From: Styela clava
Taxonomy: Eukaryota
DNA: 64,000 nucleotides
Direction: 5' to 3'
NCBI RefSeq assembly: GCF_964204865.1
Contig: NC_135264.1
Span: forward strand, 12,462,001 to 12,526,000
This document shows, piece after piece, positions 1 to 47,800 of this stretch. A program made the translations under genes and the position numbers. Each line of letters starts with the position of its first letter. Position 1 is the stretch's first letter. The notes under the pieces are model-generated. The model ran no database searches and was not told the origin of the DNA. It worked only from the letters and a program-made list of their open reading frames with translations.

Positions 1-1214
1 GCTCAAACTGGCCACTACCCATCCTACGGTTCACAATATCAACAAGGCACTAGTAGGCAGTATTACAACCCATATAATCAAAACTCGTACTCCCAGTACC
101 CACAAACAAACTATCAACAATATCAATCGAATGGCTACAATTATCCACAATCGACGGGAGTTTGGGGACCACAGACAAGATCTTCAGAAATCACGGAAGA
201 AGATAAGAATGCTGATAAGAATGACGATAAAAAACCAAAGATCAGATCATTTGGCTTTGACACGTATTCCATGATGAACAACTACGGTTACAATCCCATG
301 ATGCAATACCAACAAAATTATCCTATGCAAGGACCAATCATCGCCACAATGTGCAAGTAAGTTTAATAATTTTTATTGAAACGTAAATATAATACGATTC
401 GACACCGTATATTAAATATCGAGAGCTTTAAAGAGCTTTTAACCGTACATGTTGCGATTTTCCTTGACATTCCTTAGGTGATATTATTCAAGTTTTGAAA
501 TTGATTGATTTAAAACCTTACGATGCCTTTACCTAATTTATCATTTTATTTAGACGACCAGGACAGGCCTGTCAATGCAAAACAAGTGAAGACTGTGAAT
601 GCAAAAGCAGACGACCGAAGCTTTGCACTCAAAAATACACAGACGAAAGACGATTGTTTCGTGTATGGGAATATGTCACCATACCTGTCACTCAAACACA
701 CACCTACACAGACCAAACACAACAAGCGAATGATGGACAGACCTATGAACAAGATCCGGCAACAATGAGAAGCGGAGATGGAAACGATCAAACATTCCCT
801 GCACAGTCGCAAACTCACAGTACGACAGACTACCAACAACAACAACAACCGCAACAACAGCAGCCACAAGGCAGATATGAGCTCCAACAAAAGTGGCTTT
901 ATTTCAGAGTAAGTCGATTGTTATTTCATATATTGTATGCTTTATACTTACTACTTATATAAGTCCCAAAGAATCTGGTGTGAAAATTAACTCTTCAAGG
1001 CATATTCGATTCTGAGAATCAAAAATGTCACCATTTCGAAGTAAACATAGTTTAAACTGTATTCATAGCAGTTTAGCAACAAGCAAACAAATAATTAAAT
1101 ACATAATTGAGCAAATATTTAATTTTACTTAATCACATTCTCACATTTTAGAGACCCAGCGGTTGTGAATGCGAAACAATGAAGAAAACCCAAGAATACA
1201 ACTTCTTCGGCTAA
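1..1214 (+). CDS. Gene A (5'-truncated): long-form cystine-knot-like protein with Tyr/Gln-rich and Gln/Thr-rich low-complexity segments; exons <1-356, 554-908, 1152-1214
   Basis: Frame 1 is open from base 1 (AQTGHYPSYGSQYQQ...GPIIATMC). GTAAGT donor at 357 (phase 2) and TAG acceptor at 553 give K-RPGQACQCKTSEDCECKSRRPKLCTQKYTDERRLFRV...QQKWLYFR. GTAAGT at 909 (phase 0) and AG at 1151 give RPSGCECETMKKTQEYNFFG*. Cys spacing is identical to gene B. Confidence 0.85.
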
Positions 1215-3412: not shown

Positions 3413-4629
3413 AGTATCAAATAACACAAGTATCAAATATTTTATACCGAATTCGATTCGTCATTTTTGAAAAAAATTTCAGGAACGGTCGGCACTTGTT
3501 CTCGAAAAATTATCTGTGAGATTTCGTTTTGCTATTTGCTCCTTCATTAATTTATTATGTGTGTTTCTTCATTACTGTGATGTTTATCACTGTTTACTAT
3601 TCATATACATCTAACGATATTAGGGTAAAATAATCTATAAGTTCCAATAGACAGTGACATATACCCATCCCAGCCTTGGTGCCACATTTTGAATCTACTT
3701 TATTAATATGTTTGTTAGGTGTCAAATTTACAGCATCAGTATATTGTTTTTATTCCAATAAATTTATTGTGGGCTCCGTAAATAATACCCTATTGACGAG
3801 TTCCAAAACACCAAAAGTTTGAGAACCCCCGTCCTGGAAAAATAGTTTCAAATTACCTCATTACCTGTTGGTAAATCAGGACCATAGTATTTGCTTTAAA
3901 ACCAATTAGAATGATGGCTGTTTATATTGGTATGTATGTCTTAATTATATTTTTCATATTTTTTATTCACTTTGATGGTTAGCTTCAAAAAATTTCACGC
4001 AAAAATTTCATAATTTTCGAAAAATCATTAGAGTGTTTGTAATTGCTTAATTTTTATCACGATTCAATTTTTGAAACTAATTTTTCAGTTGACGTAAAAT
4101 AAAACACTTATATACAAATTACCAACAAATTATACGACATTTGACAACATTTAATATTCATATAAACTATTATGTCTTCATTATTTCCAAATAAATGAGT
4201 TTACCATTCCCGTTAATGAATTTCGCATGAGAGTTAGGGCCGAATGACGCAAAAAGAGGATTAGGACTTTTTAATTGAGCTAAACAACCATGACAATGGC
4301 AATTACTCCAACTAAATCTTTTTAAACAATTATAAAATTGATATTAACAAGTAATTATTCTTGGAAAGATTAATACTTGATTCAAGCACGGTTCAGTGAA
4401 ATAAAGCTACAATTTTAACCGGATTCATTATATTCCTAACTTGGTCTACAGATAATTTTGATTTTGATTGGGAAAAGTTATCGCGATTGGTATATTAGCA
4501 ATATCTTGCTGTTTGAATTCAACGAATGTGATTAACGTAAATTAATTTAATAAGTAGAAATATAATATAGTATTATGAATACTAATTGCAAACATCACAA
4601 ACTTTTCTTTGTCGGCCTCAGTCAATATT

Positions 4630-4693
4630 TGACGTAAATTATTGAAAATGCGTCACATGACGTACAATTCGAGCAAAATGTTTAGTATATATA
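4630..4693 (+). promoter_or_regulatory. Putative B1 core promoter: CRE/ATF-like motifs and TATA box (mirrored upstream of B2)
   Basis: TGACGTAA at 4630, TGCGTCA at 4649, TGACGTA at 4658, TATATATA at 4686, about 100 bp upstream of the ATG. Confidence 0.45.
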
Positions 4694-4785
4694 GAGAGTC
4701 CGGTATCTAACAAATCATATCAAAATCTTAACGAGATTTGAATATAAAATTATTTTTAAAACTAAGTTTGAAATTGAAAAATAAG

Positions 4786-6992
4786 ATGTTGCTGAAAGGA
4801 CTGTATCTAGTGATGACTGTCGCAACTGTATATGGAAATGTAAGTATTTTTCCTATTGTGTATTTGAAAATATAAATAATCAAATTTTAAATCAATCTAA
4901 TTAATTTCTACACTATATTGAATTGATATATTTTTGTTGGAACAAATAAAATTCATTTGCTAGGAGTACTAAAATCACTAAAAAATTGGATGTTTATGTC
5001 TAACATAGTATAGTTGGGTATGAAAATTATATTCATCATTTTTGACGAGATATTTTCATGTTCACGATCTAAAAACTTGAAATGAATCGCTGTAATATAA
5101 ATCAAATTATATTTTTTATTTATTCCAGGACTTATTGGACAAAGCAAGAGAACTTCGAACATGTGGAAGGTACGTATTTCATATTTGATTTAGAATTATA
5201 AAATAGTAAGTTCGTCCTAAATTCATGGTACAAAAACTGCTTTATTATGGAGAAATTTTTATCTGACGTTCACAGTGTAGTATTTATGCACAAAAATGCA
5301 AATAATAAACAAAGTCTTCTCTTCTTTTAGATTTGAGGAGAGAAAATGCAATGACGACAAAGCCGCAGTTTATTACACATTAACCAATCCGGGAAAGTGT
5401 TTAACGAAAGAATGCCTTCTAAAGCCAAGTACTGGATACACTGAACATCCTGACAGAAATCCTTACGTGAAATTTTTTCCTCAAAAATTCTCACAGAAAA
5501 TTATCTACACTTTCGATGAAATAAAGGCTAAAACATGCGGGTAGGCACAAGTTTTGTTATATATAATATAGTAAATAGCATTGAGGTATTTATTTTTGTC
5601 TACAAAATTGGATTTCATGAAATAATTATGAGATATGCAAACGCCGATTATAGCCATAGCTGTAGGCCACACACTGAATACCTCTATTTGGAAACAAGAT
5701 TTTTTTCAAACAACTGATGACTCGCACAGGAGTAATTTGTTTATTAATTTAATCATTACGAAACAGCATTTTGAAACGTTAACTACGTCAGCAAAAATTA
5801 GGTTGATACGATTTTAACTGAGAATATATTTTTTTTCAGTTTTCAAAATCAACCATGTACCTGTAAGCAAGGAGACAAATGCACTTGTGACAACGATAGA
5901 CTCAAAATATGCAAGCAAAAATATAGATATGAAAGAAGCTACTTCCTTGTAATTAACACAGCAAAACAAGCAATCACCTTAACAAAGCCAGTGGTTTCTC
6001 ATTCTACACAACAGAAACCTTATCATCACCAGCAATACTATAATCAGCAACAAGCTCAGATGAATTCTCAACCCAACAGCTATTCATCGTATAATAACCC
6101 GGCTCCATCGTATAATAACCCAGCCCCAAGCAACACCAATAATAAACAAGGAAATAATTATGATGAATGGTATAGCACAAGAACAGGCGAACTTCCCAAT
6201 TATTACCCCAAACCAAATATGCCGAGACCACAAAATGTCGGCGGCAGCTCGATCTTAAATCATCTTATGATGCAAAAATTTATGGGCGGTTCCAAATCTG
6301 GAGGAAATTCAGGTATGATGAAATGGTTACTCATGTCTCAGATGATGAATAAACAAGGCACTGGACAACAACAACAACAACAAGTCGGATATGACACCGG
6401 AAACACTGCTCAGAATCATGCTTCCCACACACCTGGACCAAATACCCAGCACAAATCCAACGGACGACAGAAAGCAGCAAAACATGGCACCGTGTTCAGT
6501 CCGACAATGCTTTATTACATGATGAAGAGAAACAATAAAGACTCCGGTTCCAGTGGAAGTAAATTTCTTCAAATGTTACCAATGTTAATGGGAAATAACA
6601 ACTTATTTGGAGGTCAATTGGAACTCAAATCTTTGTGGGTGCAAGTACCATACGATTGCAAATGTGAACACAGGGAAGAACAAGAATATGATGATGACGA
6701 AGACGATGATGATTCCATATTTTCACTCATTCCATATTTGTTGGGAGGGGGAGGGAACCCTATGACAGCATTAATGGGAGGGGGAGGGAACTCTATGGCA
6801 GCATTAATGGGAGGGGGAGGGAACCCTATGGCAGCCTTAATGGGAGGGGGTGGAAACCCTATGGCAGCATTAATGGGTGGATCTGGTCTTGGTGGCAATC
6901 CACTTAATGTTTACAGCATGCTAATGAATCAGAATAATAATAATGACTATGGCTCCCCTAGATCAAATTCGCTTCCATTCTTACCATACTAA
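4786..6992 (+). CDS. Gene B1: secreted long-form cystine-knot-like protein, 485 aa; exons 4786-4839, 5129-5169, 5331-5540, 5840-6992
   Basis: Signal-peptide-like MLLKGLYLVMTVATVYG. Three GT-AG introns (phases 0, 2, 2) join in frame with ORFs 5296..5544 and 5991..6992. 12 Cys: ...KAKTCGFQNQPCTCKQGDKCTCDNDRLKICKQKYRYERSYFLV [low-complexity loop] LKSLWVQVPYDCKC. Confidence 0.9.
6744..6875 (+). repeat. Coding 33-bp minisatellite x4 encoding GGGGN(P/S)M(A/T)ALM
   Basis: Four GGAGGGGGAGGGAACCCTATGGCAGCATTAATG-like units. The B2 copy is at 17595-17726. Confidence 0.95.
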
Positions 6993-8521
6993 AATTTCGA
7001 ATCAAATAAGTAGATATTTAGTTTATGGCCTCTTTAAACTGAAATAACAAATACTTAATTGAATATGAACATTTTTTACTATTGAATGTGTGCATTTTTG
7101 TTTTGAATGAATTTGTTTTATCATTTTGGAACTTGTTTATTATTTATTTTGTTAATATAAAAATTTTACTAAAACTATTTTCTTGTTTATTTGAGTTTTT
7201 GTAAAACATGGTAAAAAGGAAAAGCAAATAGAACAGAGGATATTGTAAGATCTATTTCAAAATATTTAGAAACATAATAGATGGGATAAATAACATATTA
7301 ATTAGCTACTGACAACTTATTCCTAATCACATGTAAACAGGGTTTTCATTTCCACATTTAATTGGTATCGTAGGGTTTCTGAAATAAAAAAAATTCAAAA
7401 TTGTAAAACGAAATTTTATGATGGTGTTCGGAGAGAAATAGTGATGAAATCACAATCGGCTTCGATATTCGTCTTTATTACGGTGATTATGCGTGAAAAT
7501 CTACCGCATGCTAACTTTAAATCAGCAAAGAAATTTAAATAATAGTGCCGTTTTAAGATTTTTACCGTTTGTTTTTGCATCTTCACTCCGAAGAAGTGTT
7601 TCCCCTATACAAATATCTAAATATAAATTGATGTTTTTGCTACGTAGCAAGACACAAGAACTGATCGTGGCAATTTGAAAAGCATTTTGAAATTTAGTCG
7701 GAAGTTTCACAAAACAGACCCCAAGACTTCCGTGATTAGTTTCAGGCGAAGGTTTTAGTTTGAATATCTACAGTAAGACATAAACACATCACACACGAAT
7801 TAAATAGGTTGCATTCGGTTTTCAATAGGCCGGCCTTGTTATAATAAATAAATGTATGATATATTGTTATTCCAACTTTCAATCGTTCAATTTTTTTGAT
7901 GATTTATTTATAATAATTATGTGCATTTACTGTATTCTTTTAACCTATGGGTAAAAATCCGAAAAGATATAAAGCTAAACATCTTGCGGATTTGATAATC
8001 GGATTTCAAACTTTTGTTGTTATAGAAAGATTAAAACTTACTCGCTAATACTGTTCAAGGTATATGAATACCTTGAACAGTAGCATACCTTGAATAAGCA
8101 TTCGCGTCAATTTTCTTGTATCCTTGTCACTTGCAGTCTAAAAGAAAATGGCAGTTTTTTCAAATCAAGTTTCATAATAAAAAATGATCAATGGAAAAAG
8201 GGCCAAAAACTAAAAAAAAATTAAACAATGAAAGCACAATTATATAAAAGTTAATTTGAATGGTTTTGAATTTTCGTCGATATTTATATTGAAATAATAA
8301 AACTAAATATATTTAAAAACTGATTGGCAACAGACAAAAACTTTTATTATTCCTCATATTGAAAATAATTCCGTAGGTATTTATAATTTAGAAAAACTGG
8401 AAATTTAAATGGTAAAAACGTTCATGTAATAATTGCACGACAGGGAGCTTCCGATCTGAAATATTTTATGACGCAGAAAACGAAAAAATCTAACGCTTGT
8501 GGTCATTTGTTATATATATAT

Positions 8522-12628: not shown

Positions 12629-13488
12629 ATGAGACTTCTGACGATCTTTGTTTATTGCTGTGTTATAGCATATTGCATGGCTCTAGACGTGGAAAATCCG
12701 AACCCTCTACCCGAATGTCAAATGAAAAATGTTCCGTAAGTCCGTTTATATATTTGGTTTTATAAATGCTTTTATGCAAAAATAAAATCTGAAACAATAA
12801 TTTAATTCTTTCTTCTTATTTCGATTGGAGATTTCTAAAATAATTATTAGAGAACGTGAGTTCTTAAAAAGTTCTAAATATCGTATGTGATCTTTTAATT
12901 ATGTATGTTAACGTTCAATAATTTTTTCAGAATTAAGAATCCTGAATATTGCCAAGTTACAACCCCGACTAATTTCTGCCCAACGAAAAAATGCAGAATC
13001 AAAATTACAAAAGGTTTTTTGTCTACTGATCCCCCGAGTGAAGTCGACTTGATTGGAGGTATTTACGAGGCAGTTGACGAGTGCGAGTAAGTCAATTATC
13101 AAATTATACATAGACATTCGGTTTGAGGATATGCTTTTTTACACTACAAAAAAATATATTTCCATTTAAAATTATATAAAAAATCTACCTTGTTTCTCAT
13201 ATTTTAGGGTATACAATAAGAAATGCAGTTTATGGGTTAAAGGTTGTACATGTCAAGCGAGAGTCAAGATGATATGGAGGAAAGCCAAAATTCAAACCAA
13301 AATATCCAGAGAACCAGCAGAAAGATATGTTCGCATCAGGGTGAGCATTATTTTGTGTTCTGATTCCTAAAGGTTGATTACTGTTTATTAAACCAGTGTT
13401 TATTCTATTTCTTCAGATTCCAGATGGTTGCATTTGTGCTAAAAAGACTGTCATACTGGATGACAAGATATTCAAGTTTCCAAATTAA
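12629..13488 (+). CDS. Gene C1: secreted short-form cystine-knot-like protein, 155 aa; exons 12629-12735, 12931-13086, 13208-13340, 13417-13488
   Basis: MRLLTIFVYCCVIAYCMA-LDVENPNPLPECQMKNVP|IKNPEYC...AVDECE|VYNKKCSLWVKGCTCQARVKMIWRKAKIQTKISREPAERYVRIR|IPDGCICAKKTVILDDKIFKFPN*. GT-AG introns in phases 2, 2, 0; 10 Cys after the signal peptide. Confidence 0.92.
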
Positions 13489-14950: not shown

Positions 14951-15629
14951 AGAAAAATTGGACTTTTCCAAGCTATCCCCCCACGAATATATAAATACTC
15001 ACATTATTATGTTAGTGTTTGTGTTAGGGTTATAGGAATGCAGATTGCACTGAAAATTGTAAGAATTCCGCATGAGAGTTAGAGCTGAATGACGCAAAAA
15101 GTGGATTGTGACATTTTAATCGAGCTAAACAACGATGACAATGGCAATTACCTCCACTAATTCTTTTCGAACAATTATAAAATTGATATTATCCCGTAAT
15201 TATGCTTGAAAAGATTATTACTTGATTCAGGCACGGGCCAGTGAAATAAAGCTACAATTTTAACCGGATTCATTATATTCCTAACCTGGTCTAAAGATAA
15301 TTTGATTTTAATTGGTAAAAGTTATCGCGATTGGTATATTAGCATTATCGTGCTGTTTGAATTCAACGAATGTGATTAACGTAAATTAATCTAATAAGTA
15401 GAAAATATAATATCGTATTATGAATACTAATTGCAAACATCACAACTTTTCTTTGTCGGCCTTAGTCAATATTTGACGTAAATTATTGAAAATGCGTCAC
15501 ATGACGTACAATTCGAGCAAAATGTTTAGTATATATAGAGAGTCCGGTATCGAACAAATCATATCAAAATCTTAACGACATTTGAATATAAAATTATTCT
15601 TAAAATTAAGTTTAAAATTGGAAAATAAG

Positions 15630-17843
15630 ATGTTGCTGAAAGGACTGTATCTAGTGATGACTGTCGCATTTGTATATGGAAATGTAAGTATTTTTCTTAT
15701 TGTGTATTTGAAAATATAAATATTCAAATTTTAAATCAATCTAATTAATTTCTACACTATATTGAATTGATATATTTTTGTTGGAACAAATAAAATTCAT
15801 TTGCTAGGAGTACTAAAATCACAAATCACTAAAAAATTGGATGTTTATGTCTAACATAGTATAGTTGGGTATGAAAATTATATTCATCATTTTCGACGAG
15901 ATATTTTCATGTTCACGATCTAAAAACTTGGAATGAATCGCTGTAATATAAATCAAATTATATTTTTTATTTATTCCAGGACTTATTGAACAAAGCAAGA
16001 GTACTTCGAACATGTGGAAGGTACGTATTTTAGATTTCATTAGAAATTATGAAATAGTAAGTTCGTCCTAAATTCATGGTACAAAAACTGCTTTATTATG
16101 GAGAAATTTTTGTCTGAAGTTTACAGTGTAGTATTGATGCACAAAAATGCAAATAATAAACAAAGTCTTCTCTTCTTTTAGAATTGAGGAGAGAAAATGC
16201 AATGACGACAAAGCCGCAGTTTATTACACATTAACCAATCCGGGAAAGTGTTTAACGAAAGAATGCCTTCTAAAGCCAAGTACTGGATACACTGAACATC
16301 CTGACAGAAATCCTTACGTGAAATTTTTTCCTCAAAAATTCTCACAGAAAATTATCTACACTTTCGATGAAATAAAGGCTAAAACATGCGGGTAAGCACA
16401 AGTTTTGTTATATATAATATAGTAAATAGCATTGAGGTATTTATTTTCGTCTACAAAATTGGATTTCATGAAATAATTATGAGATATGCAAACGCCGATT
16501 ATAGCCATAGCTGTAGGCCACACACTGAATACCTCTATTTGGAAACAAGATTTTTTTCAAACTGATGACTCGCACAGGAGTAATTTGTTTATTAATTTAA
16601 TCATTATGAAACAGCATTTTGAAACGTTAACTACGTCAGCAAAAATTAGGTTAATACGATTTTAACTGAGAATATATATATTTTTTTCAGTTTTCAAAAT
16701 CAACCATGTACCTGTAAGCAAGGAGACAAATGCACTTGTGACAACGATAGACTCAAAATATGCAAGCAAAAATATAGATATGAAAGAAGCTACTTCCTTG
16801 TAATTAACACAGCAAAACAAGCAATCACCTTAACAAAGCCAGTGGTTTCTCATTCTACACAACAGAAACCTCATCATCACCAGCAATACTATAATCAGCA
16901 ACAAGCTCAGATGAATTCTCAACCCAACAGCTATTCATCGTATAATAACCCAGCTCCATCGTATAATAACCCAGCCCCAAGCAACACCGATAATGGACAA
17001 GGAAACAATTATGATGAATGGTATAGCACAAGAACAGGCGAACTTCCCAATTATTACCCCAAACAAAATATGCCGAGACCACAAAATGTCGGCGGCAGCT
17101 CGATCTTAAATCATCTTATGATGCAAAAATTTATGGGCGGTTCCAAATCTGGAGGAAATTCAGGTATGATGAAATGGTTACTCATGTCTCAGATGATGAA
17201 TAAACAAGGCACTGGACAACAACAACAACAACAAGTCGGATATGACACCGGAAACACTGCTCAGAATCATGCTTCCCACACACCTGGACCAAATACCCAG
17301 CACAAACCCAACGGACGACAGAAAGCAGCAAAACATGGCACCGTGTTCAGTCCGACAATGCTTTATTACATGATGAAGAGAAACAATAAAGACTCCGGTT
17401 CCAGTGGAAGTAAATTTCTTCAAATGTTACCAATGTTAATGGGAAATAACAACTTATTTGGAGGTCAATTGGAACTCAAATCTTTGTGGGTGCAAGTACC
17501 ATACGATTGCAAATGTGAACACAGGGAAGAACAAGAATATGATGATGACGAAGACGATGATGATTCCATATTTTCACTCATTCCATATTTGTTGGGAGGG
17601 GGAGGGAACCCTATGACAGCATTAATGGGAGGGGGAGGGAACCCTATGGCAGCATTAATGGGAGGGGGAGGGAACCCTATGGCAGCCTTAATGGGAGGGG
17701 GTGGAAACCCTATGGCAGCATTAATGGGTGGATCTGGTCTTGGTGGCAATCCACTTAATGTTTACAGCATGCTAATGAATCAGAATAATAATAATGACTA
17801 TGGCTCCCCTAGATCAAATTCGCTTCCATTCTTACCATACTAA
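15630..17843 (+). CDS. Gene B2: near-identical copy of B1, 485 aa; exons 15630-15683, 15980-16020, 16182-16391, 16691-17843
   Basis: Same exon lengths and splice positions as B1, open frame, about 10 amino-acid differences by manual comparison. Confidence 0.9.
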
Positions 17844-19380
17844 AATTTCGAATCAAATAAGTAGATATTTAGTTTATGGCCTCTTTAAACTGAAATAACA
17901 AATACTTAATTGAATATGAACATTTTTTACTATTGAATGTGTGCATTTTTGTTTTCAATGAATTTGTTTTATCATTTTGGAACTTGTTTATTATTTATTT
18001 TGTTAATATAAAAAGTTTACTAAAACTATTTTCTTGTTTATTTGAGTTTTTGTAAAACATGGTAAAAGGGAAAAGCAAAAAGAACAGAGGATATTGTAAG
18101 ATCAATTTCAAAATATTTAGAAACATAATAGATAGGATTAATAACATATTAATTAGCTACTGACAACTTATTCCTAATCACATGTAAACAGGGTTTTCAT
18201 TCCCACATTTTATTGGTATCGTAGGGTTTCTGAAATAAAATAAAATCAAAATTGTAAAACAAAATTTTATGATGGTGTTCGGAGAGAAATAGTGATGAAA
18301 TGGCAATCGGCTTCGGTATTCGTCTTTATTTCGGTGAATATGCGTGAAAATCTACCGCATGCTAACTTTAAATCAGCAAAGAAATTTAAATAATAGTGCC
18401 GTTTTAAGATTTTTACCGTTTGTTTTTGCATCTTCACTCCGAAGAAGTGTTTCCCCTATACAAATATCTAAATATAAATTGGTGTTTTTGCTGCGTAGCA
18501 GGACACAAGAACTGATCGTGGCAATTTGCAAAGCATTTTGAAATTTAGTCGGAAGTTTCACAAAACAGACCCCAAGACTTCCGTGATTAGTTTCAAGCAA
18601 AGGTTTTAGTTTGAATATCTACGGTAAGACATAAACACATCACACACGGATTAAATAGGATGCATTCGGTTTTCAATAGGCCGGCCTTGTTATAATAAAT
18701 AAATGTATGATATATTGTTATTCCAACTTTCAATCGTTCAATTTTTTTGATGATTTATATATAATAATTATGTGCATTAACTGTATTCTTTTAACCTATG
18801 GGTAAAAACCCGAAAAGATATAAAGCTAAACATCTTGCGGATTTGATAATCGGATTTCAAACTTTTGTTGTTATAGAAAGATTAAAACTTACTCGTTAAT
18901 ACTGTTCAAGGTATATGAATACCTTTGTTTAGCATTCGCGTCAATTTTCTTGTATCCTTGTCACTTGCAGTCTAAAAGAAAAAGGCAGTTTTTTCAAATC
19001 AAGTTTCATAATAAAAAATGATAAATGGAAAAAGGGCCAAAAACTAAAAAAAAATTTTAAACAATGAAAGCACAATTATATAAAAGTTAATTTGAATGGT
19101 TTTGAATTTTCGTCGATATTTATATTGAAATAATAAAACTAAATATATTTAAAAACTGATTGTCAACAGACAAATACTTTAATTATTCAGCATATTCAAA
19201 ATAATTCCATAGGTATTTATATTTCGGAAAAACTGGAAATTGAAATGTTAAAAACGTTTATGTAATAATTGCACGACAGGGAGCTTCCGATTTGAAATAT
19301 TTTATGACGCAGAAAATGAAAAAATCTAACGCTTGCGGTTATTTGTTATACATATATATTTGGTATATATATATATATAT

Positions 19381-23444: not shown

Positions 23445-24303
23445 ATGAGATTTCTGACGATCTTTGTTCATTGCTGTGTTTTAGCATATTGCATGGCTTT
23501 AGACGTGAAAAATCCGAATCCTTTACCAGAATGTCAAATGAAAAATGTTCCGTAAGTCCGTTTATATTATTGGTTTATAAAATGCTTTTATGTAGAAATA
23601 AAATCTGGAACAATGATTTAATTATTTTTTCTTATTTCGAATTGAGATTTCTAAAATAATTATTAGAGAACGTGAGTTCTTAAAAAGTTCTAAATATCGT
23701 ATGTGATCTTTTAATTATGCATGATAACGTTCAGTCATTTTTTCAGAATTAAGAATCCTGAATATTGCCAAGTTACAACCCCGACTAATTACTGCCCAAC
23801 GAAAAAATGCAGAATCAAAATTACAAAAGGTTTTTTGTCAACTGATCCACCGACTGAAGTCGACTTGATTGGAGGTATTTACGAGGCAGTTGACGAGTGC
23901 GAGTAAGTCAATTATCAAATTATACATAGACATTTGATTTGAGGATATGCTTTTTTTACAAAACAAAAATATATTTCCATTTAAAATCGTATAAAAAACC
24001 TACCTTGTTTCTTAAATTTTAGGGTATACAATAAGAGATGCAGTTTATGGGTTAATGATTGTACATGTCAAGCGAGAGTCAAGATGATATGGAGGAAAGC
24101 CAAAATTCAAACCAAAATTTCCAGAGAACCAGCAGAAAGATACGTCCGCATCAGGGTGAGTATTATTTTGTGTTCTGATTCCTAAAGGTTGATTACTGTA
24201 TATTAAACCAGTGTTTATTCTATTTCTTCAGATTCCAGATGGTTGCATTTGTGCTAAAAAGACTGTCATACTGGATGACAAGATATTCAAGTTTCCAAAT
24301 TAA
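23445..24303 (+). CDS. Gene C2: short-form paralog, 155 aa; exons 23445-23551, 23747-23902, 24023-24155, 24232-24303
   Basis: Same exon lengths and splice sites as C1; intact frame. Confidence 0.92.
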
Positions 24304-30751: not shown

Positions 30752-31609
30752 ATGAGATTTCTAACGATCATTGTTCATTGCTGTGTTTTAGCATATTGCA
30801 TGGCTTTAGACGTGGAAAATCCGAATCCTTTACCAGAATGTCAAATGAAAAATGTTCCGTAAGTCCGTTTATATTATTGGTTTATAAAATGCTTTTATGT
30901 AGAAATAAAATCTGGAACAATGATTTAATTATTTTTCCTTATTTCGAATGGAGATTTCTAAAATAATTATTAGAGAACGTGAGTTCTTGAAAAGTTCTAA
31001 ATATCGTATGTGATCTTTTAATTATGATGATAACGTTCAGTCATTTTTTCAGAATTAAGAATCCTGAATATTGCCAAGTTACAACCCCGACTAATTACTG
31101 CCCAACGAAAAAATGCAGAATCAAAATTACAAAAGGTTTTTTGTCAACTGATCCACCGACTGAAGTCGACTTGATTGGAGGTATTTACGAGGCAGTTGAC
31201 GAGTGCGAGTAAGTCAATTACCAAATTATACATAGACATTTGATTTGAGGATATGCTTTTTTTACAAAACAAAAATATATTTCCATTTAAAATCGTATAA
31301 AAAATCTACCTTGTTTCTTAAATTTTAGGGTATACAATAAGAGATGCAGTTTATGGGTTAAAGATTGTACATGTCAAGCGAGAGTCAAGATGATATGGAG
31401 GAAAGCCAAAATTCAAACCAAAATTTCCAGAGAACCAGCAGAAAGATATGTCCGCATCAGGGTGAGTATTATTTTGTGTTCTGATTCCTAAAGGTTGATT
31501 ACTGTATATTAAACCAGTGTTTATTCTATTTCTTCAGATTCCAGATGGTTGCATTTGTGCTAAAAAGACTGTCATACTGGATGACAAGATATTCAAGTTT
31601 CCAAATTAA
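30752..31609 (+). CDS. Gene C3: short-form paralog, 155 aa; exons 30752-30858, 31053-31208, 31329-31461, 31538-31609
   Basis: Same exon structure as C1; intact frame. Confidence 0.92.
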
Positions 31610-38586: not shown

Positions 38587-39444
38587 ATGAGACTTCTTAC
38601 GATCTTTGTTTATTGCTGTGTTATAGCATATTGCATGGCTCTAGACGTGGAAAATCCGAATCCTCTACCAGAATGTCAAATGAAAAATGTTCCGTAAGTC
38701 CGTTTATATTATGGGTTTAATGAGTGCTTTTATGTAAAAATAAAATCTGAAACAATGATTTAATTCTTTCTTCTTATTTCGAATGGAGATTTCTAAAATA
38801 TTTATTAGAGAACGTGAGTTCTTAAAAGTTCTGAATATCGTATGTGATTTTTTAATTATGCATGCTAATGTTCAATCATTTTTTCAGAATTAAGAATCCT
38901 GAATATTGCCAAGTTACAACCTCGACTAATTTCTGCCCAACGAAAAAATGCAGAATCAAAATTACAAAAGGGTTTTTGGCAACTGATCCCCCGAGTGAAG
39001 TAGACTTGATTGGAGGTATTTACGAGGCAGTTGACGAGTGCGAGTAAGTCAATTATCAAATTATACATAGACATTTGATTTGAGAATATGCTTTTTTTTC
39101 AAAACAAAAATCTATTTCCATTTAAAATCATATAAAAAATCTACCTTGTTTCCTATATTTTAGGATATACAATAAGAGATGCAGTTTATGGGTTAAAGAT
39201 TGTACATGTCAAGCGAGAGTCAAGATGATATGGAGGAAAGCCAAAATTCAAACCAAAATATCCAGAGAACCAGCAGAAAGATATGTCCGCATCAGGGTGA
39301 GTATCATTTTGTGTTCTGATTCCTAAAGGTTGATTACTGCATATTAAACCAGTGTTTATCCTATTTCTTTAGATTCCAGATGGTTGCATTTGTGCTAAGA
39401 AGACTGCCATACTGGATGACAAGATATTCAAGTTTCCAAATTAA
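38587..39444 (+). CDS. Gene C4: short-form paralog, 155 aa; exons 38587-38693, 38888-39043, 39164-39296, 39373-39444
   Basis: Same exon structure as C1; intact frame. Confidence 0.92.
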
Positions 39445-44877: not shown

Positions 44878-47800
44878 ATGAAACGGTTTATTCATTTTCT
44901 TGTCTGGCTGTGTGTTGGCGCGGCCTTCTGCTCAGCGGGAGGTCCACCAAGACGGGATAAAGCGCCACCACCACCACCACCAGAATGCCAACTTAAAAGA
45001 CCACCGTAAGTGAACTGCCATTGCTTATATTTTTCAGCGTGTTTATATTTTATAATAATGTAATTATACTTTCCTGGTAATCTAATTCACCCATATTCGT
45101 TTTAATGTAAGTCAAATTGTCCTTAATACGAGCTCGTTAATATCTAGAAAGGTCGTTTAAAAAAAGTTTAAACAAGATGTCCTGTCATTTAATTATTTTT
45201 TATTCATTTCACATTTTTCTAAATATTTTCTAAAAATTATTTTAGATTAAACAATCCGGATCCCTGTCCCATGCATGTCTATTGGGAACACAGATGTTTG
45301 CCTCCGAAACCATGTTTATTTACAATTAAGAAAGGGATTGTAAGAGAAAAAGGCGTGAAACATTACGTGAAACTGTCTCTTCCAGTAACCCACTTATCTC
45401 GGGAATGCAAGTATGTAAAATATCTGTTCTATTAAATGTAATTTTAAAAGTTGCATGTTACTAGATATTCTTCGCTGTTACAATTTTAATAGGACAGCTG
45501 AAAAATCTACGTTACATATTTAAAGTATAGTTTCATAGTTTCAAATTCGTTACACTCGCAAAAAGGTAAGTCGTATTAATCTAATTTTATTTTCAGAAAA
45601 TATGGAAAAATATGTAGTCCTGGAAAAAAATATTGCACATGCCAACACAAGGGAGAGTGGGTTAAGATAAAGGCTTGGGTACTTTGGAAAAAGAACAACT
45701 TTCATATTTCTGCTCTCAAAAAAGTTGAAGCGCTAGTAAGTTAATGAAACGGAAAAAGCCTGACAAGCTTGATTAAAATTATCCTGACAGATATTGTAAT
45801 GGCTTCTGTTTTCAAAATAGAGTTTGCTTGCAACATTGGTCTTAAAAATGGCTATTCAATGTCTTGGGTACTTTGGAAAAAGAACAACTTTCATATTTCT
45901 GCTCTCAAAAAAGTTGAAGCGCTAGTAAGTTAATGAAACGGAAAAAACCTGACAAGCTTGATTAAAATTATCCTGACAGATATTGTAATGGCTTCTGTTT
46001 TCAAAATAGAGTTTGCTTGCAACATTGGTCTTAAAAATGGCTATTCAATGTATCACTAATAAATACTTCGTCATGTAATAAATCACTGTCAACGGATTTA
46101 CTATTCGAATATTAGGTACCACGTGATCTGCGTCGCTTCACTTGGACACAGAACGTCTCTGAACCGATCGTGAATTGCGCGAGAATTCACCTACAACGCT
46201 CGCTAACAGACAAAAGCGACAAATTTGAAAAATCGTCTTTGCGTTGTGGTGTTATTTGTTTTCTTTGCGTTTCGATCGTTCATTTCAATTCCATATGTCG
46301 CACAAAGAGGTACCGACACCGTTCCCTAAATTTAGAAACGTTAAATCAGATGAGGTATTTAAAATAAATATTCCAGATTTTAAACTCTGTGTGATTGGCG
46401 GCACGGGATTAGCCGTTTCATGCATGAACCAAACATAAATTTGTTAAACAAAAATTAAAAGTTGAATTAGCTTTTGCGTGAAACCGTACATAGTATAACA
46501 CGAACAAGCTATGACCAGAAAAGAAATGGCAGGACATAGTTCTTTTAATGTACTTTCAAATAATTCTTTAGTGATCCCTTTCATTCTTGACTAAATAATG
46601 TTTCGAAAGTGTAAACATTTCACTCGGGCATGCATGGCGGGTGGAGTGTAGAAATCGTGAACAGGAGTATGGCGTAAAATCAATCGTGAATTTCGATGTA
46701 ACAACGCGCACTGTCTCGTTTACCAATTGTTTCATCGTCGGAAATGATTACATTCGTTATATTTTGAGCATTTTTGCACTAATAAATAGGGCGTGACATT
46801 ATCAAAATTGTCAAGAGAAGTAAAAGTGAATTCGCAAATTCCGTAAATAAAATCGTGAATTACTCGGTAACGATATTAGCTATAATGATCGCGCGGTTTG
46901 TTGAAAGAAAACGTCGGAACTTGGAAGAGTTAGTTATAATTAGTGCCTGGCCATCTATTATGCACAAAAGTAAAAAAGCGCAATTTTTTTCAGCATTAGG
47001 TCGCATATGTAAATTATTATTCAGGAAGCGCTGTTTATTAACGTCATCTCGTCATATGGCCACGCAGAAATGCCTTTATTGTCGAATTATTTAGTCACTA
47101 TTTTAAATCAACATTCGGGATTGACGCAATCGCAGCTTTGCGAGGTTTATCTGTAAAGTAACATAGACACCATAAAAAAGCATAGCAAAGTTAATTACGG
47201 TATTGTCTTAATAAATATCTACATCCCAGTATCGATAATAATATACCATTCGCTTAATATTGTGACGGTAAATTTACAAACGTTGATAAGTAATATGAGA
47301 GCCAACGCAAATGATAAAAATGAGAATAATATTAATTTGGGTTTTTACATCAATCCTTAATGGTTTTAACAGTTGTTGCCGACGTGACCGCACGGGTAAA
47401 CCCGAAATATAAACGTCGATGTCCGCCGACCCGAAAGAATTAATACTTGCAAATAACAGAACGGTTTTATAAATTATATATCGCCGCAAAAACGGTCACG
47501 GTGACAAAAACAATCAGCGATTATGACGAAATTAACCAGTAAAAAAACGCTTTGTAGCGAATTTTTCAATGTCTTTATTAATTTCCAAAGGGAGTATCGA
47601 CCGACGTTGTAGACCTCCTGTTGTGTATAAAAAAATATTCGTTATTCGGTATTCGTTAAAAATATTCGAACTATTCGATTCGAAAAAAATATTCGATTTT
47701 GCCCACCCCTACATGTGATATATTATACTAAGATTTAATATTTTATCTGAGACTTATATTCTGACTCTTAATCTGTATTTGAATTGTCAGTTATTCCGAG

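Follow-up and report, generated by a model that had tools for sequence, protein, structure and literature searches.

Can a cystine knot of the growth-factor type hold a low-complexity segment of more than 200 residues inside its own domain, and what could such a protein do? This question is raised by gene B of the tunicate Styela clava, which lies in a 64-kb stretch of contig NC_135264.1 (positions 12,462,001 to 12,526,000; hereafter the window), an AT-rich region of ~31% G+C. A first, sequence-only reading of this DNA had proposed that gene B encodes a cystine-knot protein split by a long Q/N/Y/G/S-rich insertion. We found that gene B is a transcribed gene with a signal peptide, that its long exon is read through without internal splicing, and that the insert falls between the two strands of the second hairpin of what is predicted to be a cystine-knot growth factor fold.

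Exon structure, transcription and composition of gene B

Gene B corresponds to LOC120334190 (labeled P0001), a protein of 485 aa annotated as "uncharacterized" by NCBI. The translation of the exon at 5840-6992 is 100% identical to residues 103-485 of this protein, and the joined translation of exons 4786-4839, 5129-5169, 5331-5540 and 5840-6992, all AG/GT-bordered, gives P0001 exactly; full-length searches used the database protein, and the window sequence was queried exon by exon. Translation of 5841-6992 yields 384 open codons, for which the probability by chance at the base composition of the window is ~2e-14. P0001 has 12 cysteines, with 248 residues between Cys126 and Cys375. The features of the first gene copy (B1), all on the plus strand, are as follows:

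4680 to 4839, plus: exon 1, with 5' untranslated region (UTR) from 4680, where RNA contig X1 starts, start codon at 4786 and an 18-codon signal peptide
5129 to 5169, plus: exon 2, 41 nt, with the first Cys of the mature protein (RNA joints in contigs X1 and X2)
5331 to 5540, plus: exon 3, with the N-terminal Cys residues and the first beta-hairpin, ending in Cys101 (alignment, donor position, AlphaFold strands)
5840 to 5951, plus: start of exon 4, with the Cys cluster CxC-x5-CxC-x7-C (Cys108-126) and strand beta3, KQKYRYERSYFLV (translation, alignment)
5952 to 6617, plus: 222-residue low-complexity loop, residues 140-361 (composition, predicted disorder)
6252 to 6347, plus: Met-rich hydrophobic segments 1 and 2, residues 240-250 and 261-271 (translation, clustering test)
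6501 to 6590, plus: Met-rich hydrophobic segments 3 and 4, residues 323-332 and 343-352, kept in paralog B3
6618 to 6665, plus: strand beta4 and final knot motif LELKSLWVQ-VPYDCKC, residues 362-377 (alignment; modeled strand 363-370)
6666 to 6989, plus: C-terminal tail of 108 residues, with an acidic patch, 33-bp repeats and an N-rich end
6990 to 7216, plus: stop codon and 3' UTR, up to the end of RNA contig X1

RNA contigs of a single 2020 study, drawn from three of its runs, were mapped onto 4600-7400; such contigs drop rare variants, and a minor isoform spliced within exon 4 is thus possible. They skip 4839 to 5129, 5167 to 5329 (cut +2) and 5539 to 5839, with GT..AG ends at each skip, and cover the insert as unbroken RNA in three cases (X1, 5839-6741; X2, 5839-6758; X4, 5839-6784). 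Contig X1 alone, 1731 nt long, spans 4680-7216. That exon 5840-6992 is not internally spliced, a check asked for by the sequence-only reading, was thus borne out, since X1, X2 and X4 cross the insert while splicing the three upstream introns, and the insert as an intron was rejected. Length variants of the loop in the RNA are all in-frame, adding 3 or 9 nt (1 or 3 Gln codons) at the (ACA)n run at 6364, and X1 differs from the assembly by 66 nt, i.e. two 33-bp repeat units, within the tail (6741-6808). Several single-base differences between RNA and assembly match the second gene copy (B2, see below) and not B1, so that either copy or allele may be the expressed one. We also observed low-depth minus-strand contigs inside introns 3 and 1 of gene B (5610-5822, X5, and 4927-5140, record 2 of X1), which may represent unspliced or antisense RNA, or else carried-over DNA.

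The insert itself is as large and as biased in composition as had been claimed. Between SYFLV and LELKSLW it comprises 222 residues (N28, Q26, S22, G21, P16, M16, K15, T14, Y13), with Q and N making up 24%, the six residues Q, N, S, G, Y and P together 57%, and a net charge of +14. The spacing from the pre-terminal Cys to the final CxC, recounted from the translations, came out as previously given, at 33-35 residues in the short paralogs, ~98 in gene A and 248 in gene B. The four Met-rich segments described before are present at residues 240-250, 261-271, 323-332 and 343-352 and are clustered beyond shuffled sequences: gene B has 14 Met pairs within 5 residues against 5.4 ± 2.1 in shuffles (p 0.002); its 11-residue windows containing 6 or more hydrophobic residues number 19, compared with 1.3 in shuffles, and none of 5000 shuffles reached this count (p <2e-4). 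A polar, Q/N/S/G/Y-rich spacer, predicted to be disordered, is here combined with clustered hydrophobic residues, the arrangement of a sticker-and-spacer sequence. The loop also holds a tandem duplication of 21 bp (6085-6128) and the (ACA)n polyQ run (6365-6383) whose length varies in RNA. The tail carries the acidic patch (6666-6713, net ~-11), 4.1 copies of a 33-bp repeat encoding GGGGNPMAALM (6742-6877) and the N-rich end.

Predicted fold and position of the insert

The fold was approached through the short members of the family. The AlphaFold model of the short paralog P0003, built on an alignment of eight paralogs, has a mean predicted local distance difference test score (pLDDT) of 80.7 and shows two long hairpins (strands 47-61/64-81 and 96-114/117-136). 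A Foldseek search with this model is led by neurotrophins (NGF, NT3, BDNF), coagulogen and Spaetzle, the best E value being 0.013. In an exhaustive structural comparison against 48,161 chains, 33 chains reached Z ≥2 and 33/33 are cystine-knot growth factors, with Z scores of 5.3 for NGF, 5.0 for proNGF, 4.8 for coagulogen, 4.6 for gremlin, 4.1 for IL-17A and 3.9 for Spaetzle. On the strength of these models we accept the cystine-knot growth factor superfamily as the predicted fold of the family; within it the NGF/coagulogen subtype is favoured by the model comparison, and an IL-17 type is also possible. Note that the two long hairpins of this fold were found in the model of P0003 and not measured on gene B, and that the absolute scores are modest.

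Gene B aligns with the short paralogs on both sides of its insert. No variation is seen at Cys55, 60, 101, 108 and 110 and little at Cys375/377, the phase-2 intron after Cys101 has the same place as in all short paralogs, and the gene B segment SLWVQVPYDCKC aligns with beta4-[IV]P..CxC of these proteins. The strand-like flanks reported on either side of the insert both align to short paralogs, and gene B keeps the family cysteines and strands on both sides, with the insert between the two strands of the second hairpin. By homology, this conservation suggests that the loop of gene B may be closed, tied at its base by the knot.

The AlphaFold model of full-length P0001, built on the paralog alignment, has a mean pLDDT of 44. 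Hairpin 1 (strands 57-70, 78-80 and 89-94) is modeled at pLDDT 69-83 and strand 363-370, just before CKC, at 78. By contrast with these parts, loop residues 143-359 and the tail lie below 50, except for one short stretch at residues 323-331, the sole helix predicted in the loop. The disorder that had been proposed for the insert was thus recovered by AlphaFold with the insert present; the loop of gene B is predicted to be disordered and beta4 to rejoin the core. A structural search with the P0001 model gave uninformative matches, dominated by the signal-peptide helix.

Origin of the loop and the long-loop subfamily

How did the loop arise? No donor of insert or tail was found elsewhere in the S. 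clava genome, loop and tail sequences occurring only in B1 and B2. Growth in place is the simplest origin, since no genomic donor exists and both loop and tail contain slippage-type repeats, and the loop probably grew in this way. Origin as an exonised intron was rejected, as the last intron of the paralogs follows beta4 whereas the gene B loop precedes it. This last intron, which precedes [IV]P..CxC in the short paralogs, in gene A and in B3, is absent from gene B; exon 4 of gene B therefore corresponds to the last two exons of the paralogs fused.

Low-complexity loops of 98 to 338 residues in hairpin 2 are found in four genes, A, B1, B2 and B3, located as follows:

558 to 935, plus: gene A exon with the same Cys cluster and a ~98-residue Q/T-rich loop at the same hairpin tip; the final exon (RPSGCEC) lies at ~1152-1215
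L002:5455-6357 = C19:12461455-12462357, running into window positions 1-357, plus: gene A hairpin-1 exon, with a second giant loop
15630 to 17843, plus: gene B copy 2 (B2), with exon 4 at 16691-17843, from a tandem duplication of ~10.85 kb
L003:3164-4354 = C19:12563164-12564354, minus: long exon of gene B3, from a genome search with the gene B Cys-cluster segment
about L003:2470-2900, minus: last exon of gene B3; the intron before VPDGCKC is retained, unlike in B

Gene A is 34% identical to gene B over the Cys cluster and beta3, and the hairpin-1 motifs of the two genes match; A is the sister of B and has giant loops in both hairpins. Its hairpin-1 loop, of ~250 residues, contains some eight TGYPxTNTQ-like repeats along with a GGFG..FGGM..MGGG segment and a stretch rich in Ser, Tyr, Gly and Gln. 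Relatedness of this loop to that of gene B was rejected, the likeness being compositional only.

Gene B3 lies ~37 kb past the end of the window. Its knot part is 44-53% identical to that of B (44% over the Cys cluster/beta3 segment), and BLASTP aligns the two at E 1e-4 over B residues 318-373. At the same site as in B, it carries a loop of 338 residues (Q 20%, P 11%, G 10%, Y 9%, M 6%), together with a low-complexity tail of ~135 residues that is K/D-rich at its end. Smith-Waterman alignment of the B and B3 loops scores 100 against 65 ± 10 in shuffles (z 3.5). Conservation is confined to the final two Met-rich segments (ML[YR]Y[ML]M and FLxxLPxLM) and a polyQ-GY element; no other part of the loops can be aligned. 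As the two loops are colinear, the loop predates the B/B3 split, and the pattern of hydrophobic segments is at least partly under constraint.

A further property common to the long-loop proteins is the absence of N-glycosylation sequons (N-x-S/T). We found none in the mature B protein (shuffle mean 5.3, p 0.004), in the B3 long exon (shuffle mean 3.0, p 0.04) or in the A hairpin-1 exon (shuffle mean 3.8, p 0.014), so that three long-loop proteins are sequon-free despite abundant Asn, Ser and Thr. This absence fits selection against N-glycans on the loops of A, B and B3, which may have acted there.

The two copies of gene B lie in duplication units (4214-8499 and 15060-19335) that are 96.4% identical over 4.3 kb. 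Their exons 4 differ at 9/1152 nt (0.8%), affecting 2 synonymous and 6 non-synonymous codons. Exon 4 is more alike between B1 and B2 than the whole duplication, with few synonymous changes, and this low divergence points to gene conversion or to constraint beyond the protein level.

More generally, the window holds a tandem array composed of a partial gene A, B1, B2, four near-identical short genes and further short genes. The short genes are built alike: one exon codes for the signal peptide, another carries hairpin 1 and ends at a Cys followed by a phase-2 intron, a further one contains C..CxC and hairpin 2, and the final exon starts with [IV]P..CxC. Four near-identical copies of one short paralog of 155 aa (the P0002 cluster) lie at 12929-13470, 23745-24290, 31051-31600 and 38886-39440, interleaved with other family members, which indicates a very recent tandem amplification. 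A genome profile search with the hairpin-1 exon returned at least 22 copies, almost all of them within C19:12.46-12.70 Mb. A different contig (C18:5751138-5755079) carries two family exons, one of which scores exactly as the window copy at 45244-45411; they could represent a haplotig or a segmental duplicate of recent date.

Beyond this genome, we found no relatives by sequence. A HMMER scan of 1.84 billion protein representatives with the hairpin-1 exon profile gave single-stretch matches that are all S. clava "uncharacterized" proteins; the multi-stretch matches, of which the only one with a named source is from Anaeramoeba, were taken as spurious. Word-based homologue searches with exon 4, P0001 residues 20-150 and the short-paralog profile returned S. 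clava proteins only. Neither Pfam at E up to 10, queried with P0001, its exons and eight short paralogs (no NGF, Spaetzle, Coagulogen, IL17 or other relevant family), nor single-sequence and profile searches of PDB sequences (nothing relevant), nor the ESM Atlas, queried with the knot part and with loop plus tail (no usable match), added any. Limited literature searches found no paper on LOC120334190, nor any tying S. clava to cystine knots or IL-17 of this kind. The family is best classed as new and lineage-restricted within the growth-factor knot fold, and is detectable only in S. clava.

Possible functions and comparison with known systems

What would a knot domain with such a loop be for? 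We tentatively lean, at a little under an even chance, toward the view that the long-loop genes represent a shift from a cytokine-like ligand to a scaffold, material or adhesive role. The cystine knot would close the loop covalently at its base, and the loop (basic, Q/N/Y/G/S-rich, with conserved Met-rich segments) and the tail (acidic patch, Gly/Met repeats) would self-associate or cross-link outside the cell. Self-association could proceed via hydrophobic Met/Tyr contacts and charge complementarity between the loop (+14) and the acidic patch (-11); candidate sites include the tunic, wound plugs, the coats of eggs or larvae, an adhesive or an extracellular condensate. A bolder form of this proposal, possible in our view yet distinctly less probable than the general shift in role, is that A, B1/B2 and B3 form a new class of 'knot-and-loop' material proteins, in which the NGF-fold knot would act as the covalent clasp of a prion-like loop of 100-340 residues, and unglycosylated Met/Tyr-rich segments, together with blocks of opposite charge, would drive condensation or cross-linking into a tunicate-specific biomaterial. 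A cytokine fold would then have been recruited as cross-linker independently of coagulogen.

Several points weigh against a material role. The Cys cluster of gene B (residues 96-137) is modeled at pLDDT 28-53 and is not confidently placed by AlphaFold, and the closed-loop topology, with the distal CKC within the knot, is suggested by homology only. Self-association is likewise suggested by composition alone. Colinearity of the B and B3 loops is moderately significant, 3/500 shuffles reaching the observed score. The codon changes between B1 and B2 exons 4 (6 non-synonymous, 2 synonymous) are all in loop and tail, as could be seen if most of the loop were weakly constrained. Finally, the remaining family members resemble fast-evolving secreted ligands or effectors.

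The alternative that survives best, doubtful but to be taken seriously, is that gene B has remained a ligand of cytokine-like or Spaetzle/NGF-like kind whose loop is a regulatory appendage, such as a proteolysed pro-region, a matrix or tunic tether or a modulator of receptor access. The predicted fold is that of signaling ligands, and the family members are small secreted proteins that evolve fast and are encoded in a tandem array; moreover, coagulogen and Spaetzle are both cleavage-activated, and the loop does hold one KR, which the sequence-only reading had suggested as a cleavage point. However, this single KR (residues 331-332) does not exceed chance (1 found, 1.6 expected) and no furin-type RxxR site is present, so that the suggestion finds no support in the counts. 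Conserved Met-rich segments and sequon avoidance would, in addition, be unneeded in a discarded linker, and three genes have extra low-complexity loops or tails outside the loop site.

A functionless loop, expanded by slippage and tolerated at a permissive hairpin tip, where nothing but the reading frame is preserved, allowing translation to reach the final CxC, seems to us unlikely, and more so than the ligand. The 21-bp duplication, the polymorphic (ACA)n run and the 33-bp repeats of variable copy number are what slippage would leave, and this alternative also draws on the lack of a donor sequence in the genome, on the 6:2 ratio of non-synonymous to synonymous changes between B1 and B2 and on the fact that most of the loop is unalignable between B, B3 and A. 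It is countered by the two C-terminal Met-rich segments kept across the B/B3 split, the non-random clustering of hydrophobic residues, the sequon-free state of three genes and the persistence of long loops in four. As for an artefact of annotation or assembly, with the insert an unrecognised intron or the gene a pseudogene, it is hardly credible: the short paralogs do carry an intron nearby, directly before [IV]P..CxC, and nothing else speaks for it, while three independent RNA contigs span the whole insert and splice real introns, the 384 open codons defy chance, two intact copies of gene B exist and the paralogs' intron sits after beta4, not at the loop.

How do the long-loop genes, on the preferred reading of a scaffold, material or adhesive role, compare with known proteins? 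The closest structural counterparts of the short member P0003 are NGF and the neurotrophins (PDB 1sg1, 1bet and 4ec7; Z 5.3, root-mean-square deviation (rmsd) 4.3 Å, 86 residues aligned). NGF and, by prediction, the Styela family are secreted proteins in which a knot ending in CxC ties two long twisted hairpins, but NGF has 6 cysteines and short hairpin loops, whereas the Styela family has 10-12 cysteines and, in the long-loop genes, loops of 98-338 residues. The Spaetzle/Drosophila neurotrophins have the same fold as P0003 (Z 3.9 and 3.2), and the Pfam Spaetzle model does not match the Styela family. Spaetzle-type invertebrate secreted ligands also bear disordered pro-domains or Q-rich regions; the disordered parts of Spaetzle are, however, outside the knot domain, whereas the gene B loop is inside a hairpin.

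Interleukin-17 of the complete-knot type T1A has a cystine-knot cytokine fold as well (IL-17A Z 4.1 and IL-25 Z 3.6 against P0003) and often occurs in tandem arrays in invertebrates; the Styela family differs in having no Pfam IL17 match and in scoring lower with IL-17 than with NGF, though by only ~1 Z unit. Complete-knot IL-17 types are reported lost in tunicates (PMC11087794), and the presence in Styela of an unannotated family with a predicted complete knot is notable for that reason.

With respect to material function, the sequence-only reading had singled out coagulogen, the NGF-fold protein that serves as a polymerising material and has no low-complexity loop. Its gelation follows removal of the helical peptide C, close to the N-terminus, by a serine protease. 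At the level of the fold the comparison held: coagulogen (PDB 1aoc) gives the longest coverage of the P0003 model (residues 24-138, Z 4.8, rmsd 3.7 Å, 89 residues aligned), and both have an NGF-like knot with extra disulfides, predicted in the case of P0003. It did not extend to sequence or processing, as we found no sequence match and no matching cleavage motifs, and the gene B insert is at the second hairpin tip whereas the excised peptide is elsewhere in the coagulogen chain. Gel-forming mucins and von Willebrand factor, in which a knot domain and very long disordered regions build an extracellular gel, match P0003 weakly in structure through their CTCK domain (4nt5, Z 2.8). The disordered region of mucins is heavily glycosylated and outside the dimerising knot, in contrast to the gene B loop, which is within the knot domain and sequon-free. 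Coagulogen and the knot-bearing mucins are in our view functional analogies, not relatives. A likeness in composition only was noted between abductin, whose repeat is GGFGGMGGGX (PMC13052691), and both the gene B tail (GGGGNPMAALM) and the GGFG..FGGM..MGGG segment of gene A; abductin has no cystine knot and no homology to the Styela long-loop genes.

Overall, the evidence points to an unannotated Styela family of predicted NGF/Spaetzle fold in which some members depart from the common design. Cystine-knot growth factors are usually compact, short-looped ligands, and within limited literature searches we know of no described member with a disordered loop of 200-340 residues inside the knot domain. 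Should the loop self-associate, an NGF-type fold would have become a material for a second time, independently of coagulogen, and nature would offer an example of a low-complexity loop closed by a disulfide knot, relevant to condensate and biomaterial research. As gene B is short, expressed and duplicated, the idea is directly testable.

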